This document shows, in pieces, positions 700 through 40,247 of a stretch of 42,785 bases of DNA. A program made the position numbers and the translations under genes. Source of the DNA: Octopus bimaculoides (Eukaryota); NCBI RefSeq assembly GCF_001194135.2, contig NC_068981.1, forward strand, positions 133,978,283-134,021,067, given 5' to 3'. The first letter of the stretch is position 1. Each line of letters opens with the position of its first letter. The notes under the pieces are model-generated. The model worked only from the letters and a program-made list of their open reading frames with translations. It did no database searches and had not been told where the DNA came from.

Positions 700-1215
700 T
701 ATAGGCACATGGCTGTAGGGTTAGGAAGCTTGCTTCCCAACTACATGGTTTCAGGTTCAGTCCCACGGCATGGCACCTTGGTCAAGTGTCTTCTACTATA
801 GCCTTGGGCCAACCGAAGCTTTGTAATTGAATTTGGTAGGTGTTTGTGCCTCCTAACAGAGAGGGAACAGGTATGGCAGTATGGTTAAGAAGCTTACTTT
901 GCAACTACTTGGTTCTGGGTTCAGTCCCAATGCTTGGTACTCCTACTATGGCCCCAGCTCAACCAGTCTTTGTAAGTAAATTTGGTAAATGAAAACTGTA
1001 TGGAAGCCAGCCATATATGTGTGTATCCCTCATCCACCTACACATGCTTGACAAACGGTGTTAGTTTGTTTACTTCCTCGTAACTTAGCAGCTTGGTAAA
1101 AGACTGAGAGAATAAGTATAAGTGCTGAGGTCGATTTGTTCAACTAAAACCCTTCAAGGTGGTGCTCAAGCATGGCCACAGCCCCATGACAAACAAATAA
1201 AATGGAAGAATAAAA
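700..1215 (+). mobile_element. Two adjacent SINE copies (family A: GGCTGTGTGGTAAGAAGCTTGCTTCC...), first one 3'-truncated
   Basis: Both match the family A head and body seen at 1368-1748, 12042-12387, 18495-18842 and 40982-41688. Confidence 0.8.
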
Positions 1216-1220
1216 GATAC

Positions 1221-1321
1221 CTTTTTAATAACAGTGACTTGTCCCAAGTATCCTGCAGTACCACTTTCTATGAGAGGAATGTTAGCTGCCAGGCACAGAC
1301 GATTGACATGGTTACGAGCAG
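1221..1321 (-). CDS. UBA2: SUMO-activating enzyme subunit 2, coding exon 5 ((A)[33 protein letters not shown]); gene continues beyond the window start
   Basis: 101 nt, AG/GT flanked, phase-compatible with exon 4. Near-identical to the human UBA2 segment [34 protein letters not shown]. Confidence 0.97.
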
Positions 1322-1367: not shown

Positions 1368-1748
1368 TAGGTTCAGACATGGCTGTGTGGTAAGAAGCTT
1401 GCTTCCCAACCACATGGTTCCGGGTTCAGTCCCAATGCGTCCCACCTTGGGCAAGTGCTTTTAACTATAACTTTGAGATGACCAAAGCCTTCTGAGTGGA
1501 TTTGGTAGACTGAAACTGAAAGAAGCCCATCATGTGTGTGTATGCCTGTGCTTCTGCTTGTCTCCTACATCACCACCTGACAACTGGTGTTGGTGTGTTT
1601 ATATCCCTGTAACGTAGCAGTTTGGCAAAAGACACTGATACAGTAAGTACTAAGCTTAAAAAATAATTCCTGGGGTCAATTTGTCCAATTAAAATCCTTC
1701 AAGACTCCAGCACAGCCACAGTCAAATAACTGAAACACATAAATTAAA
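1368..1748 (+). mobile_element. SINE family A, near full length
   Basis: tRNA-like head with GGTTCAGTCCC B-box, central TG microsatellite, CAGTCAAAT.ACTGAAAC tail shared with other copies. Confidence 0.85.
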
Positions 1749-2104
1749 TATGATTGTGGGGCAGTTTTTTTTTTTACTTTTTTATTTTTTTATTCTTAGC
1801 AATTACTTTGTTTGGTGGCAAACTGGCAATCATTAGAGCATTGAATTAAATGACCCGTGGTATCTTTTCTGATACTTGGTATTCTGCTGAGGCTAACTTT
1901 GACTTTTGTCCTTTTGAAGTCAAGAAAAAAGTGTCAAACCAAGTTGGTGGCTGGAATGACAAAACTGCATGAGCACCTCTGCCTGCCTGATCTGCAAGAA
2001 ATAACAGCCAAATTTCTTCGCTCACAATAAATGTCTTTTAAAAAACATAAGAAACGCAGGACTCACTGTATCTAGAAATGCCTTATCTAATATTTTAGAT
2101 AACG

Positions 2105-9629: not shown

Positions 9630-10960
9630 AATAAAGACAAGTTTAACACATGCTTTCAACAAGCCCTTCAACTCAGACATCCCAAATTAAAGGTCTTACA
9701 ACCAAAAGCCCTACCATACATTTCCACATACAACCCTCTTAATAACGAAGCCTTCGACACCATCCTTCAAAACATTCCCCTGCTAAAAAAGAACCACAGA
9801 ATGAACTTAATCCTCCAAACACACACCATTATAAAAGGCAAGAGACGGCCTAAAAAGTCTCCTAACACAAGCTCGAATACGCTCAACAACAACAACACTA
9901 AAGCCGTCAGTAAAAAAATGCGGTAGACCCAACTGCAGGATATGTGTCAATTTAATTGAGGGATCAGAGTTCTCCCTAAAACAGGGACAAAATTAAACAG
10001 TGCAAAGTAACTTCACATGTACTTCGGAGAACCTGATATGCGCACTAACCTGCTCTGGGTGTCAAGAGCAGTACATAGATCAAAAAAAAAAAAAAAAAAA
10101 AAAAGTCTGCATCAATGGATGACTCTGCACAAATCCCAGATCAAAATTCCGAAAAACAGAAAAATAGCATTCAGCCAACACATCGATATTTGTGCCAATA
10201 ACAAAAATCCAAGTTTCAGAATTTTTCCCCTCTATCAATTCAGAGACGATACAACCTACAGCCAAAGAATTAGTAAAGAGTCTCTCTCACAAAATACAGA
10301 CCCCTTCTGAACGCATCTACAACAAATGACATATCCACCACAACCTTAGAATAACACACACACGCAAATATTAAAAATGATAAACTCCAAAGAGATACTC
10401 AAGGAATTATAAAAAAACATAAAAAATAATCCCAATCACTGCTCACTCCACTAGTTACTATCACACTATCCCGCATTCTATTATCACTCTTTCTCTTCTT
10501 CCTTTCCACCACCTCCTCCCTTACTTTATTACTACTACTGCTGTTTAGAATAACACATTATAAACAATACATTCAAAAGGGATTTCCCAAGAATTCAAAT
10601 CACTACAGGTCATTTTCAGGACACTTAACCAATTAACACTCTGCTACTATCATAGCACTCCCGCTTCTTCTTAGCCAAGAATTCACAATGACCTCGAACC
10701 CACANNNNNNNNNNTAGCACTCCCGCTTCTTCTTAGCCAAGAATTCACAATGACCTCGAACCCACAAGAGTTAACAAGAGAAACAGAGACAGACAGAAAG
10801 AAGGAAAATGCCCCTTGTATTTGAATACTATACAAGTATGTTTTTAGAAAGACTTTTCATTTAAATTTGCCAAAATTTAATTTTCCCAAAATTTGTTATC
10901 CATATTTACAGTTGAAAAGATCTCAAAGATCGAAACTGGTACTGAAATGTTTTTTATAAA
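9630..10960 (+). mobile_element. Penelope-like element 3' part: RT-to-endonuclease linker, GIY-YIG endonuclease relic, 3' pLTR-like tail
   Basis: LPYISTYNP..., KKCGRPNCRIC, NLICALTCSGCQEQYIDQ (degenerate GIY-YIG, 10030-10083), MTLHKSQIK, FRIFPLYQ, KYRPLLN. Contains stops and frameshifts; followed by a hammerhead motif. Confidence 0.85.
10902..10950 (+). ncRNA. Minimal type I hammerhead ribozyme motif, U3:A8 core variant
   Basis: atttacag-UUGAAAA-GAUC(ucaaa)GAUC-GAAA-C(ug)GU-A-cugaaau. Stem I pairs 10904-10911 with 10942-10948, stem II has 4 bp with G10.1-C11.1, stem III has 2 bp, cleavage triplet GUA. Confidence 0.7.
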
Positions 10961-23732: not shown

Positions 23733-23751
23733 ATGTCTACTTTACGTACCA
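23733..23751 (+). CDS. HAUS4: HAUS augmin-like complex subunit 4, coding exon 1 (MSTLRT+1 nt)
   Basis: accATG context and A|GTGAGT donor; phase 1 fits the exon 2 frame. Short exon, inferred from phase and position only. Confidence 0.72.
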
Positions 23752-24599
23752 GTGAGTAAGAATTGTAATATATATATATTGATTATTGCTCGATAATTAT
23801 TTACTTTTACCGGTTATTTATTTTTTTCTTAACTAAACAGTCGCTTATTAAACTTAGATTATGAAGTTTCTTAGGTAGCCAATGTTTTCTTTTAGCCCTC
23901 TTATTAATGTCCTTGGAATTTAATAATCTGGGTTGCAAGACTAAAATTTATATCTTGATGAAATTTATATAGACTTTCCAGGTATCCATCCATCCTCTCC
24001 GCCCATTATTCCTCAGGTACCTCCTCCATAGGATCCTTTCAGAAGCTGCTGGATTCTCGAGCGTGGGACTATGGATATTATCTCCTGCCAGTTGGTTCAG
24101 TATTTCGAAATTCCATTAAGAACAACTTAATATTTCAGCTTTCTGAATTCGAGTATCTTCTCCCTGTACAAGATACTGTGAGAGTATTCCTTTATAGAAT
24201 TTGTGGAAAAACTTCCGCCCGTTCCCCCACCCCCATTTTCTCCTAAATTTGTTAATTAAAAAATTTTTGGGGGGGGGCAAAAATCCCCGTTTTCGGATAC
24301 GGAGGTTCCGGAAAATTGCCCAAATGTGGCATTGTGAAATTTTTCCCCACACAAATTCTTCAATTTTGACTTTTTCCCCAACACTAACCATAACATCTTG
24401 GTATTTCGTTTCTAAGATCCATGAAGATGAAAGTACTTACCTTGTCAAAAGGCGAAGGTAAAGAATATGCACACCCGATGTTTAGGGTTAGGGTTATACC
24501 AAAAACTGCTAGTGTGCGTTTTCTTTACCTCCGCCGTTTAAAAAAAAATTTTTTTTTATGAAACCTTCACCTTACTGACAGCATCCCTGTACATGGCTC

Positions 24600-24965
24600 A
24601 TATAGCTCACACTAACCACTCATCTATCCCTAGTTTCCACATTGACCATCAGCTGCTCACTTTTGCACTGTTGATAAAGCTAGAGAGTCATCCCCTAATG
24701 TAGCAACCATGTCTGCATGAATGTCCTTGAGAGTTAAACCTTTTTTTTCCCAGATACTTGATGAACACAATGTTGCTAAATTTTGCCCATTTTCAAGAGA
24801 TGTCACTACTCGTTACTTTTGGAGTCTTCTTTGAAGATTCATGTGTCAGTTTCCATGGAAAGAAACAATGTTGCTATTAATAAAAAGAGTTGAAATTGCA
24901 TTCTAGATTTCATAGCTCCAGCATCACTCTTTAAGTCAGCCTTTGAACTTTTTCTCATATTCTCC
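24600..24965 (-). mobile_element. Mariner 5' relic (TIR remnant and N-terminal HTH)
   Basis: Minus strand reads KGLTLKDIHADMVATLGDDSLALSTVQK*AA, similar to the mariner motif G.TPKEIH..M...GDDAPS.STV.KW.AEF. Confidence 0.6.
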
Positions 24966-25835
24966 TAATTAAAATGAGCAAAGTAAGGCTGTAAACTACA
25001 AAGTGCATTGAATGTTAATACAAGGAAGATTAACAGTAAATGCACTAGACATTTCTGCAAAATTATAACCACCTTTATCGCATTCAACTTTGTCCTGGTC
25101 ATGAAAATAGGAAATTCACCGAAGACTTGCATGATGTAGATGGATACATATAGACAATGGCTGAGTGTCTGACACCCCAGGTAGCCCATGAGTTCGCTGG
25201 GCCACAAGCCTACACAGACCCAAAAGAGCGGTTTCCATAAAAACATCACCCCTAGGTGGACCACCCTGCTACTTTCAGTGGAAGTGTATCAAAAGAGTTT
25301 ATACCCATTTATCATCTGTATTTTAAAAGTTCATAAAACTTACGTTTTGCCTTTAAAAATTTACTTTTTTTCGAAAGAAAGCACTTTGAATTTTTTTATT
25401 GTTTTCATTCAGAATTTTTGTTTTCTTCATAAATAAAATTTGAAATATGTTTTTCAAAAAATTGGAAAATTTCAACTGCTAAGAAGGTAGATACTTTTAC
25501 TTCCATAGAACTCTTGAAATTAAGAAGCATCTGGACCAGTTGAACTAGTTTCAAACCTGTGTTGCGATTTCATCTAACATTGGATATCTTCTTTGATTGT
25601 CAACAGAGATATTTATAATCCACAATTATTAAATTGTTTTGGCTAGACCAGTTTGCTAAAACATTTATGAATTCTGAAGTACAATATAACATTGAAACAA
25701 AATACTTAAGACACCAGCAATTTGTTAATCAAACTAGCTACCAAGAATATATTATATATGCAAATTGGTTGATCTAATTTACCTCAGCCTTTAGTAATAG
25801 TAGGTTTATATGTTTTGTCTCTGTGGGTAGTTAAA

Positions 25836-25887
25836 GAGGGTTATCAGCTGCTGATGAAATAGTGAAACTAGTCCAGCAGATCCCTTT
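25836..25887 (+). ncRNA. Minimal type I hammerhead ribozyme motif in HAUS4 intron 1 (sense)
   Basis: gcug-CUGAUGA-a(auag)u-GAAA-C(ua)GU-C-cagc. Perfect core, GUC triplet, palindromic ACUAGU stem III, stem I of about 13 bp with bulge and mismatch, stem II reduced to 1 bp. Confidence 0.65.
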
Positions 25888-25932
25888 CACTACAATAGAA
25901 TGATTCTTTTTTCCTTTCCTTTCTCTACACAG

Positions 25933-26069
25933 TTAATGAATCTTTACCTGTTAAACTATCTGAAGAAGATGTGGAATCCATGCCAGAACTTGCAAATTTG
26001 CTTCTTGCACTATCAAAAAAAATTACTCCCAACGGCAACAGTATTAAACTGCAAGAGAGTATTGAAGAG
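25933..26069 (+). CDS. HAUS4: HAUS4 exon 2 (NESLPVKLSEEDVESMPELANLLLALSKKITPNGNSIKLQESIEE)
   Basis: Long pyrimidine tract plus cAG, GT donor. Aligns with human HAUS4 LPPCNLSKEDLLQNPYFSKLLLNLSQHVDESGLS. Confidence 0.9.
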
Positions 26070-26134
26070 GTAAAATTTATTTTGTATAGATGTGGGGTTT
26101 ACTGGTTTTTATCAATCTCATCATCTTTATTTAA

Positions 26135-26370
26135 CGTCTGTTGTCCATGCTGTTATGGGTTAGACAGTTTGACTGGGCCAGTATGCTAGAAGGCTGCACC
26201 AGACTCCAGTCTGATTTGGTATGGTTTTCTACGTCTGGATGCCCTTCTTAATGCCAACCACTCCAAGAGCATAATGGGTGCTCCTACATGCCACTGGCAC
26301 AGGTGCCATTTTCATGACACCAGAGTGTGTTTACATGCCACTGGCATGGGTGCCAATTTGTGTGATGCCA
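26135..26370 (-). mobile_element. Truncated RTE-family 3' end
   Basis: GGATGCCCTTC.TAATGCCAACCAC core plus short repeat units. Confidence 0.75.
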
Positions 26371-26684: not shown

Positions 26685-26895
26685 CTTATTTTGGCACAAG
26701 GCCAGCAAATTTGAGGGGTGGTGAAGTTGATTACATCAACTCCAGTGCTTAACTGGGGCTTATTTTATCATCCCTGAAAGGATGAAAGGCCAAGTCAACC
26801 TCAGTGGCATTTGAATTCAGAATGTAAAGTTGGAAGAAATGCCACTAAGCATTTTGTCCAACGCAGCAGTGATTCTGCCAGTTTACCACCTTCAA
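26685..26895 (-). mobile_element. SINE family B
   Basis: Reverse complement of 143-360. Confidence 0.8.
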
Positions 26896-39695: not shown

Positions 39696-40066
39696 GAGGA
39701 TGACTTCACATAAAAAACAGCTATTTGTTGACATTACCCTGTCAACAGATAGTCTACTAGTTCTGCACTTTCAAGGGTGGAAAGAATGGAATTCCCCCTA
39801 TTTGAAAAACAAGTAAGGGTTGACTGCTAAAAAGATATCTTGCAATAGCACAATGTTTCAATAACATGCATTTGTCTAACCCATGCTAGCATAGAAAGTT
39901 AATATAAGATGAACAAATGAATATTTGTAAGGAGAAAGACTGATTTTTAAAGGTAACAAAATATGGACACTTTGCAGAAAGATTATAAGAATGTAAACCA
40001 GTATGAATGATCTTCATATCAAAGAATTTGATTTGTCCAATTAATTACTATTGTTTTTATTGACAG

Positions 40067-40247
40067 AGAACATATTGATAAAGAACTTAAAAAGGCTAAA
40101 GAACAGAACAGGCAGGCAAATGAAGCTTTGAGTGAATATGAAAAATTGGGCCCAGAGTATACAGCAAAGGTTGAGCAATACAGGAAACTGGAACAAGAAA
40201 TTGAGAGCATCAAATGGTCTCTAGATCGCTTAAAAAACTCATCTTAA
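40067..40247 (+). CDS. HAUS4: HAUS4 exon 9, terminal (EHIDKELKKAKEQNRQANEALSEYEKLGPEYTAKVEQYRKLEQEIESIKWSLDRLKNSS*)
   Basis: Aligns with the human C-terminus SRQVLNSYEVLGEEFDRLVKEYTVLKQATENKRWALQEF. The nine exons total 1032 nt = 343 aa plus stop, with no frame break. Confidence 0.93.

Follow-up and report, generated by a model that had tools for sequence, protein, structure and literature searches.

Minimal, type I hammerhead ribozymes are found in Penelope-like elements (PLEs) and in animal retrozymes, and Lunse et al. 2017 is said to be among the sources for them. Published Penelope-type hammerheads have a larger helix II, of 7-8 bp; in vitro, cleavage by single PLE-type hammerheads is undetectable and cleavage by dimers is weak (PMC4209133). 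The insertion architecture drawn for PLEs is an inverted pair of 5'-truncated copies (PMC8557442). Hammerheads also occur in the introns of the amniote genes RECK, CTCL and DTNB (Rfam HH9 and HH10), where, according to the summary of de la Pena & Garcia-Robles (2010) given in PMC6155905, they are complete, active and ultraconserved across classes. Engineered hammerheads in which helix II is a single G-C pair, or is missing, can retain good cleavage in vitro provided that their helices I and III are long, and miniribozymes with one G-C pair can cut long RNAs efficiently (PMC544870); deletion of helix II alone therefore does not prove that a ribozyme is dead. Vertebrate retrozymes are reported to be depleted from introns (preprint 10.64898/2026.07.22.740005), a pattern that, by analogy, would be in keeping with the survival of none but inactive copies on the sense strand of genes.

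Here we describe a hammerhead in intron 1 of the Octopus bimaculoides HAUS4 gene that is very probably a decayed, helix II-deleted transposon hammerhead, drifting neutrally, most likely without meaningful cleavage and without ribozyme function. The window that we analysed is the whole stretch of 42,785 nt to which the coordinates below refer. A sequence-only reading had placed the motif on the sense strand of HAUS4 intron 1, 59 nt 5' of exon 2, and mapping of the exons by tblastn and by pattern agrees with this placement (Table 1), the gap between C25873 and the start of exon 2 being 59 nt. The identity of the gene was established through its last exon, which matches Pfam HAUS4 (PF14735) at window positions 40065-40235 on the + strand with 37.4 bits, and through the Octopus vulgaris protein; a Pfam search with exon 2 alone gave no match. 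In particular, a protein search with the concatenated exon translations returned the HAUS4 proteins P0001 (O. vulgaris, 343 aa) and P0002 (Argonauta hians), and tblastn of P0001 located eight coding exons, all on the + strand and with 86-98% identity. The O. vulgaris locus is syntenic, at about 91-95% identity. The surroundings are CpG-poor, as had been noted, with an observed/expected ratio of 0.35 over the window. (Note that about 900 nt of intron 1, at 24390-25290, are without an O. vulgaris counterpart and represent a lineage-specific insertion or deletion; that intron 2 contains two common interspersed repeats, at 26118-26311 and 26688-26859, which many unrelated genome loci match at 72-85% identity; and that assembly gaps lie at 10705, 18904, 20641 and 28725, with N runs of 10, 134, 146 and 10 bases, respectively.)

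Table 1. Features of HAUS4 intron 1 and its flanking exons (window coordinates).
Feature	Position	Strand	Basis or remark
HAUS4 exon 1, coding part (MSTLRT plus first base of next codon)	23733..23751	+	ATG at 23733; found by pattern; before GTGAGT
HAUS4 intron 1 (GT...AG)	23752..25932	+	
Left arm of insertion: inverted family copy with decayed hammerhead (UAGAUGA core, GUU, damaged helix II)	25533..25601	-	BLAST/alignment
Right arm of transposon insertion: 5'-truncated family copy with hammerhead	25687..25905, ends approximate	+	BLAST to L002, L024; family alignments
Hammerhead ribozyme relic (type I topology)	25831..25893	+	Custom covariance model R1, 34.3 bits, E about 1e-7; Rfam HH9, 22.6 bits
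Stem I, 5' strand	25835..25850	+	Pairing probability in hammerhead register about 0.08
CUGAUGA core box (C3-A9), intact	25851..25857	+	Read directly
Helix II remnant AAUAGU	25858..25863	+	Scar of 11-nt deletion; family copies have AAUCCUAACACAGGAUU
GAAA box, ACUAGU helix III palindrome and GUC; nominal cut after C25873	25864..25873	+	
Stem I, 3' strand	25874..25887	+	CAGCAG prefers CUGCUG, including core C3-G5
HAUS4 exon 2 (protein residues 7-51)	25933..26069	+	tblastn with O. vulgaris HAUS4 (P0001)

Direct reading and evaluation of the structure confirmed the parts of the motif that had been proposed. The CUGAUGA box, the GAAA box (25864-25867), the ACUAGU palindrome (25867-25872) and the GUC triplet (25871-25873) are in place, and the two strands of stem I form 13 pairs, interrupted by one A.A mismatch and a UU bulge and including one G.U. 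The window copy thereby contains the nucleotides that define a hammerhead core, namely C3-A9, the GAA of G12-A14, A15.1-U16.1 and a cleavable NUH triplet. The six nucleotides (AAUAGU) between the two core boxes allow for stem II just what had been read, a single A25858-U25863 pair closing the loop AUAG, which is less than the helix II of at least about 2-4 bp that belongs to a three-helix hammerhead. Helix III has 2 bp and a 2-nt loop, and is formable between molecules only.

Taken by itself the core pattern is weak evidence, because chance predicts 0.14 matches per window to the bare CTGATGA-N4-30-GAAAC, and 12 of 100 shuffled windows had at least one. That frequency, and the finding that at gathering thresholds Rfam reports nothing in the window, would be compatible with a chance match and no hammerhead at all, a reading that is refuted by genome counts, BLAST homology, alignments and a covariance model, and to which we give practically no credence. 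The 2.34-Gb genome has at least 503 matches to the pattern CTGATGA-N4-30-GAAACTAGTC, versus 6 to the reversed control, and the window copy has the exact GAAACUAGUC signature that these copies have in common. Its alignment with members of one subfamily (L002, L003, L005, L024 and L031) covers about 200 nt, from 25687 to about 25905, the homology extends over both ribozyme and flanks, and BLAST matches to family copies have E values of 1e-15 to 1e-18. The genome-specific covariance model recovers it with an E value of about 1e-7. As judged from the homology and the model, the window motif is a true member of a hammerhead repeat family.

The family itself comprises several subfamilies with different stems I and II. 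Among 29 aligned copies GAAACTAGTC is invariant, and stems I and II covary with a score of 0.462 versus 0.178 after shuffling (0 of 500 shuffles reach 0.462) and 0.055-0.156 in slid controls; in each of the 11 variable pairs both partners change. Helix II of intact members measures 3-6 bp. The pattern of substitution indicates that this is a genuine hammerhead family. The proposal that the motif is a transposon-derived hammerhead whose palindromic helix III places it in the dimer-dependent animal class is upheld. A side result that may be of modest use is a large family, hardly picked up by the Rfam models, whose helices covary and which has an ACUAGU palindrome.

Several family loci have further features. 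The locus L005 contains three hammerheads, at 1205-1278 (-), 1481-1554 (+) and 1781-1848 (+), that is, an inverted copy and two direct copies; the direct copies have a 300-nt period, and the three form a retrozyme-like or pseudo-LTR-like arrangement of the subfamily to which the window copy belongs. The commonest subfamily, CUGAUGA-UGAGCAAUGACUCU-GAAACUAGUC (L027, L030 and L032), adjoins open reading frames with zf-CCHC matches of 16-20 bits. In L032 the frame with the CCHC zinc knuckle begins about 800 nt downstream, on the same strand as the hammerhead; the open reading frames beside this abundant subfamily gave nothing beyond the zinc knuckle. At about 1500-1610 of L060, a tRNA-like sequence (GGCGCATGGCTCAGTGGTTAGAGCG...), probably a nested SINE, splits a family copy right after a mutated core box.

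We scored hammerhead copies with R1, the genome-specific covariance model built from the 29 intact copies. The window copy reaches 34.3 bits and its O. vulgaris orthologue 37.4 bits, intact copies of the same subfamily reach 44.6-57.7 bits, and copies with CUGAAGA, CUUAUGA or GAGAC cores reach 33-36 bits. The window copy lacks helix II, and with it the covarying pair of helices I and II found in intact members, and it scores like copies with dead cores. R1 found no other scoring site in the window and none in the Argonauta locus. In E-value mode, Rfam Hammerhead_HH9 aligns at 25833-25896 with 22.6 bits versus a gathering score of 52, and shows helix II as deleted. When seven family loci with exact-core copies were run in the same mode, only L012 was listed (28.3 bits), amid microsatellite-driven microRNA false matches that swamp the list; the Rfam models are therefore no yardstick for the ACUAGU-type class.

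The one-pair stem II had been taken as a trait of minimal PLE hammerheads, and this is contradicted by the larger helix II of the published examples (PMC4209133), by the 3-6 bp of intact octopus copies and by the singular nature of the deletion. In alignments, relatives have CUGAUGA-AAUCCUAACACAGGAUU-GAAAC and the window copy has CUGAUGA-AAU/AGU-GAAAC, with 11 nt missing; the nearest relatives (L005, L024 and L031) have AAUCC(N)GGAUU where the window shows AAU/AGU. Spacers of 9 nt or fewer between the boxes are confined to 4 of the exact-core copies, which number at least 503, and since each of the 4 has a different remnant, no short-helix variant was amplified. An amplified 'mini' subfamily with a short helix II is accordingly rejected, and the window deletion is a singleton. 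In a sample of ~25 copies, which was ascertained by the 5' block of stem I and not by the core, internal deletions and point mutations in the core are the rule. On the evidence of these alignments, a one-pair stem II is not a family trait; that of the window copy is what an 11-nt deletion left behind.

The window hammerhead was said to have no tandem partner in cis. A tandem copy is indeed absent, but a decayed inverted partner sits 300 nt upstream on the minus strand (25601->25533); its helix II region is full-length, and R1 does not reach E<=10 on it. Resemblance is what links the family to Penelope-like elements, by analogy with the inverted, 5'-truncated pairs drawn for them. The genome contains at least 149 GIY-YIG matches, and at the best 30 of these loci neither exact nor relaxed descriptors found an ACUAGU-type hammerhead within 1.5 kb; BLAST of the hammerhead flanks against the same 30 loci returned only unrelated repeats. 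(At about position 1964 of one of them, L084, a different hammerhead-like motif, CUGAUGA-AUGCCAAUAGGCAU-GAAA, lies on the GIY-YIG strand ~200 nt downstream of the endonuclease domain; it is the sole such case in the 30 loci scanned.)

The orthologous intron of O. vulgaris (L034) contains the same element with the same deletion, CTGATGAAATATTGAAACTAGTC; insertion and deletion are therefore older than the split of the two species. The hammerhead core is the same as in the window copy, so that 13 of the 13 strictly conserved core nucleotides are intact in both. Divergence between the two hammerheads is 3/58 (5.2%), as compared to 22/475 (4.6%) and 11/274 (4.0%) in well-aligned neighbouring intron. 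One of the three differences is in the helix II remnant, which is AAUAUU in O. vulgaris at the site of AAUAGU, and two are in stem I. We rejected compensatory evolution of stem I between the two Octopus species, as one of these changes gives an A.C mismatch and the other a G.U pair. Intron 1 of Argonauta hians, which is about 2.5 kb, contains no hammerhead and no family homology. The locus shows neither the conservation beyond the neutral rate nor the presence in distant species that would mark a domesticated intronic hammerhead, and by this comparison the window hammerhead drifts as fast as the neutral intron around it.

The intact core had been considered notable in its decayed surroundings, a view that does not survive these comparisons. 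When sequences have diverged by about 4.5%, a 17-nt core has a nearly even chance of being unchanged, and the intactness of its core is the reason why the copy was picked. Moreover, the core is invariant over all subfamilies, which argues that the source copy already had an intact core, and the flanks differ among subfamilies; what remains of the window core agrees with the family majority at 22 of 23 positions, versus 70-80% in the flanks. As to conservation at the orthologous intron, which the sequence-only reading had held to bear on its proposal, the core of the motif is intact in O. vulgaris, though at neutral divergence, and the motif is absent from A. hians.

Nearest-neighbour folding, which leaves out tertiary contacts and co-transcriptional kinetics, predicts that the core is engaged elsewhere. 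The minimum free energy (MFE) fold of a 66-nt RNA (-15.5 kcal/mol, z -1.5) pairs CUGCUG at 25848-25853 with CAGCAG at 25874-25879, which buries core C3-G5; the predicted probability of this register is 0.84-0.92, and that of the hammerhead register about 0.08. A double-hammerhead dimer formed through the palindrome is predicted at -27.6 kcal/mol, less favourable than either two monomers (-31.0) or the best dimer (-38.3). In a 376-nt context the inverted arms are predicted to pair together (-89.5 kcal/mol, z -3.2), with unpaired probabilities of 0.16 for CUGAUGA, 0.05 for GAAA and 0.15 for ACUAGUC. Intact family strands are predicted to gain only -1 to -4.8 kcal/mol on the HAUS4 site, and the strand of L024 would pair in trans through the register that buries the core CUG. 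These models suggest that the core would be sequestered in three ways: by an alternative register, by a long hairpin with the inverted partner and by an unfavourable dimer. (The predicted hairpin of the two arms is long and imperfect, spans 25525-25900 and lies about 30 nt 5' of exon 2; in a cephalopod it could, on this model, be a dsRNA substrate for editing enzymes.)

A cut after C25873 had been proposed to fall upstream of a branch point near 25903, and this holds in that all possible branch-point adenosines lie 3' of C25873. The interval between 25904 and 25926 is free of adenosine, which leaves A25903 or a position upstream of it for the branch point of HAUS4 intron 1, and the family homology of the insertion extends to about 25905, thus covering A25903. 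To judge from these positions, the branch point probably lies in transposon-derived sequence. One could accordingly suppose that the tail of the transposon was co-opted as branch point, perhaps as a structured splicing element, with the hammerhead as passenger; besides the branch-point restriction and the extent of the homology, the O. vulgaris gene model, which uses the same site for the splice between exons 1 and 2, speaks for this. However, the right end of the element is approximate, the branch point is placed from sequence, and the region is no more conserved than its neighbours, and we consider such co-option unlikely.

We regard as more unlikely still the proposal of the sequence-only reading that the crippled hammerhead cleaves HAUS4 pre-mRNA slowly and in a concentration-dependent manner, as an ACUAGU dimer with a second transcript or another family RNA, and so acts as an autoregulatory or transposon-sensing switch. 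A cut 5' of the branch point would, on that proposal, lower HAUS4 mRNA. It can draw on a core, GUC site and stem I that are intact in two species, on the position of every possible branch-point adenosine downstream of the cut, and on the intact copies of its subfamily, estimated at 35 (7 among the first 100 listed matches, scaled to 503). Set against these are the neutral divergence and the lack of any compensatory change, the dimer that is predicted to be less stable than two monomers, the trans complexes with their small predicted gain, again through the CUG-burying register, the predicted burial of the site in a hairpin with the inverted arm, and Argonauta, which manages without the element. 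Nascent HAUS4 transcripts are few per nucleus, and this too counts against a dimer-dependent switch. Activity is possible in miniribozymes that have one pair for helix II (PMC544870), but PLE-type hammerheads are poor in vitro even as dimers (PMC4209133). Neither conservation nor structure nor energetics favours the switch, and predicted folds, dimer energy and trans pairing are all unfavourable. A variant of the idea concerns the intact substrate half that the HAUS4 site keeps (ACUAGUC and the 3' strand of stem I), which could be cut in trans by intact family ribozymes when the repeats are strongly transcribed; the output of a mitotic spindle gene would in this way be tied to transposon activity, and we think this highly improbable.

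The fallback of the sequence-only reading, an inactive relic, is the one favoured by the neutral divergence, the deletion of helix II, the score in the range of dead-core copies and the predicted sequestering folds. For the decayed transposon hammerhead that we prefer, the following course may be envisaged. The source would have been a hammerhead-bearing retroelement of the Penelope-like or retrozyme kind, and the motif the ribozyme of a short, 5'-truncated copy that inserted as an inverted pair (about 25533-25905) in HAUS4 intron 1 before the window species and O. vulgaris separated. Eleven nucleotides of helix II and its loop were lost at or after insertion, and the sequence has since drifted neutrally, at the pace of the intron. 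Other pairings are predicted to lock up the core nucleotides of the pre-mRNA, and such a locked core, together with the deletion and the drift, would most likely leave no cleavage at a biologically meaningful rate. Tolerance of the element in the sense strand of an essential mitotic gene would fit inactivity. The locus has little importance in itself, being one decayed copy among hundreds of transposon hammerheads in the octopus genome; what it illustrates is that, when family background, a neighbouring species and alternative folds are taken into account, a ribozyme cannot be called active or selected on the strength of its perfect catalytic core.

When compared to the amniote intronic hammerheads HH9 and HH10, the HAUS4 copy likewise sits in sense orientation within a protein-coding gene's intron and derives from a retroelement, and HH9 is its best Rfam match; unlike them, it scores far below the gathering threshold, has no helix II, drifts neutrally and is absent from Argonauta. 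With the miniribozymes it shares a helix II cut to one pair and a 4-nt linker. The miniribozymes, however, retain G10.1-C11.1 as that pair, have helices I and III that are long and stable (12 nt arms), and act in trans (PMC544870), whereas the window copy has an A-U pair, a 2-bp helix III and a core sequestered by predicted alternative pairings. The hammerheads of PLEs and animal non-LTR retrozymes (Cervera & de la Pena 2014, PMC4209133; 2020, PMC7229834) differ in having a normal or enlarged helix II of 4-8 bp, which the window copy has lost through deletion; no PLE reading frame was found beside the octopus family (best 30 GIY-YIG loci, within 1.5 kb). The octopus family nevertheless shares with them the type I topology and invariant core, a very short palindromic helix III (ACUAGU) that implies action as dimers, and copy numbers in the hundreds, the copies being dispersed, tandem and inverted and their period about 300 nt (L005), and its inverted, 5'-truncated insertion architecture is like that of PLEs (PMC8557442). 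The element is thus of a type already known, the transposon hammerhead, and the window copy is a decayed, helix II-deleted member of it.
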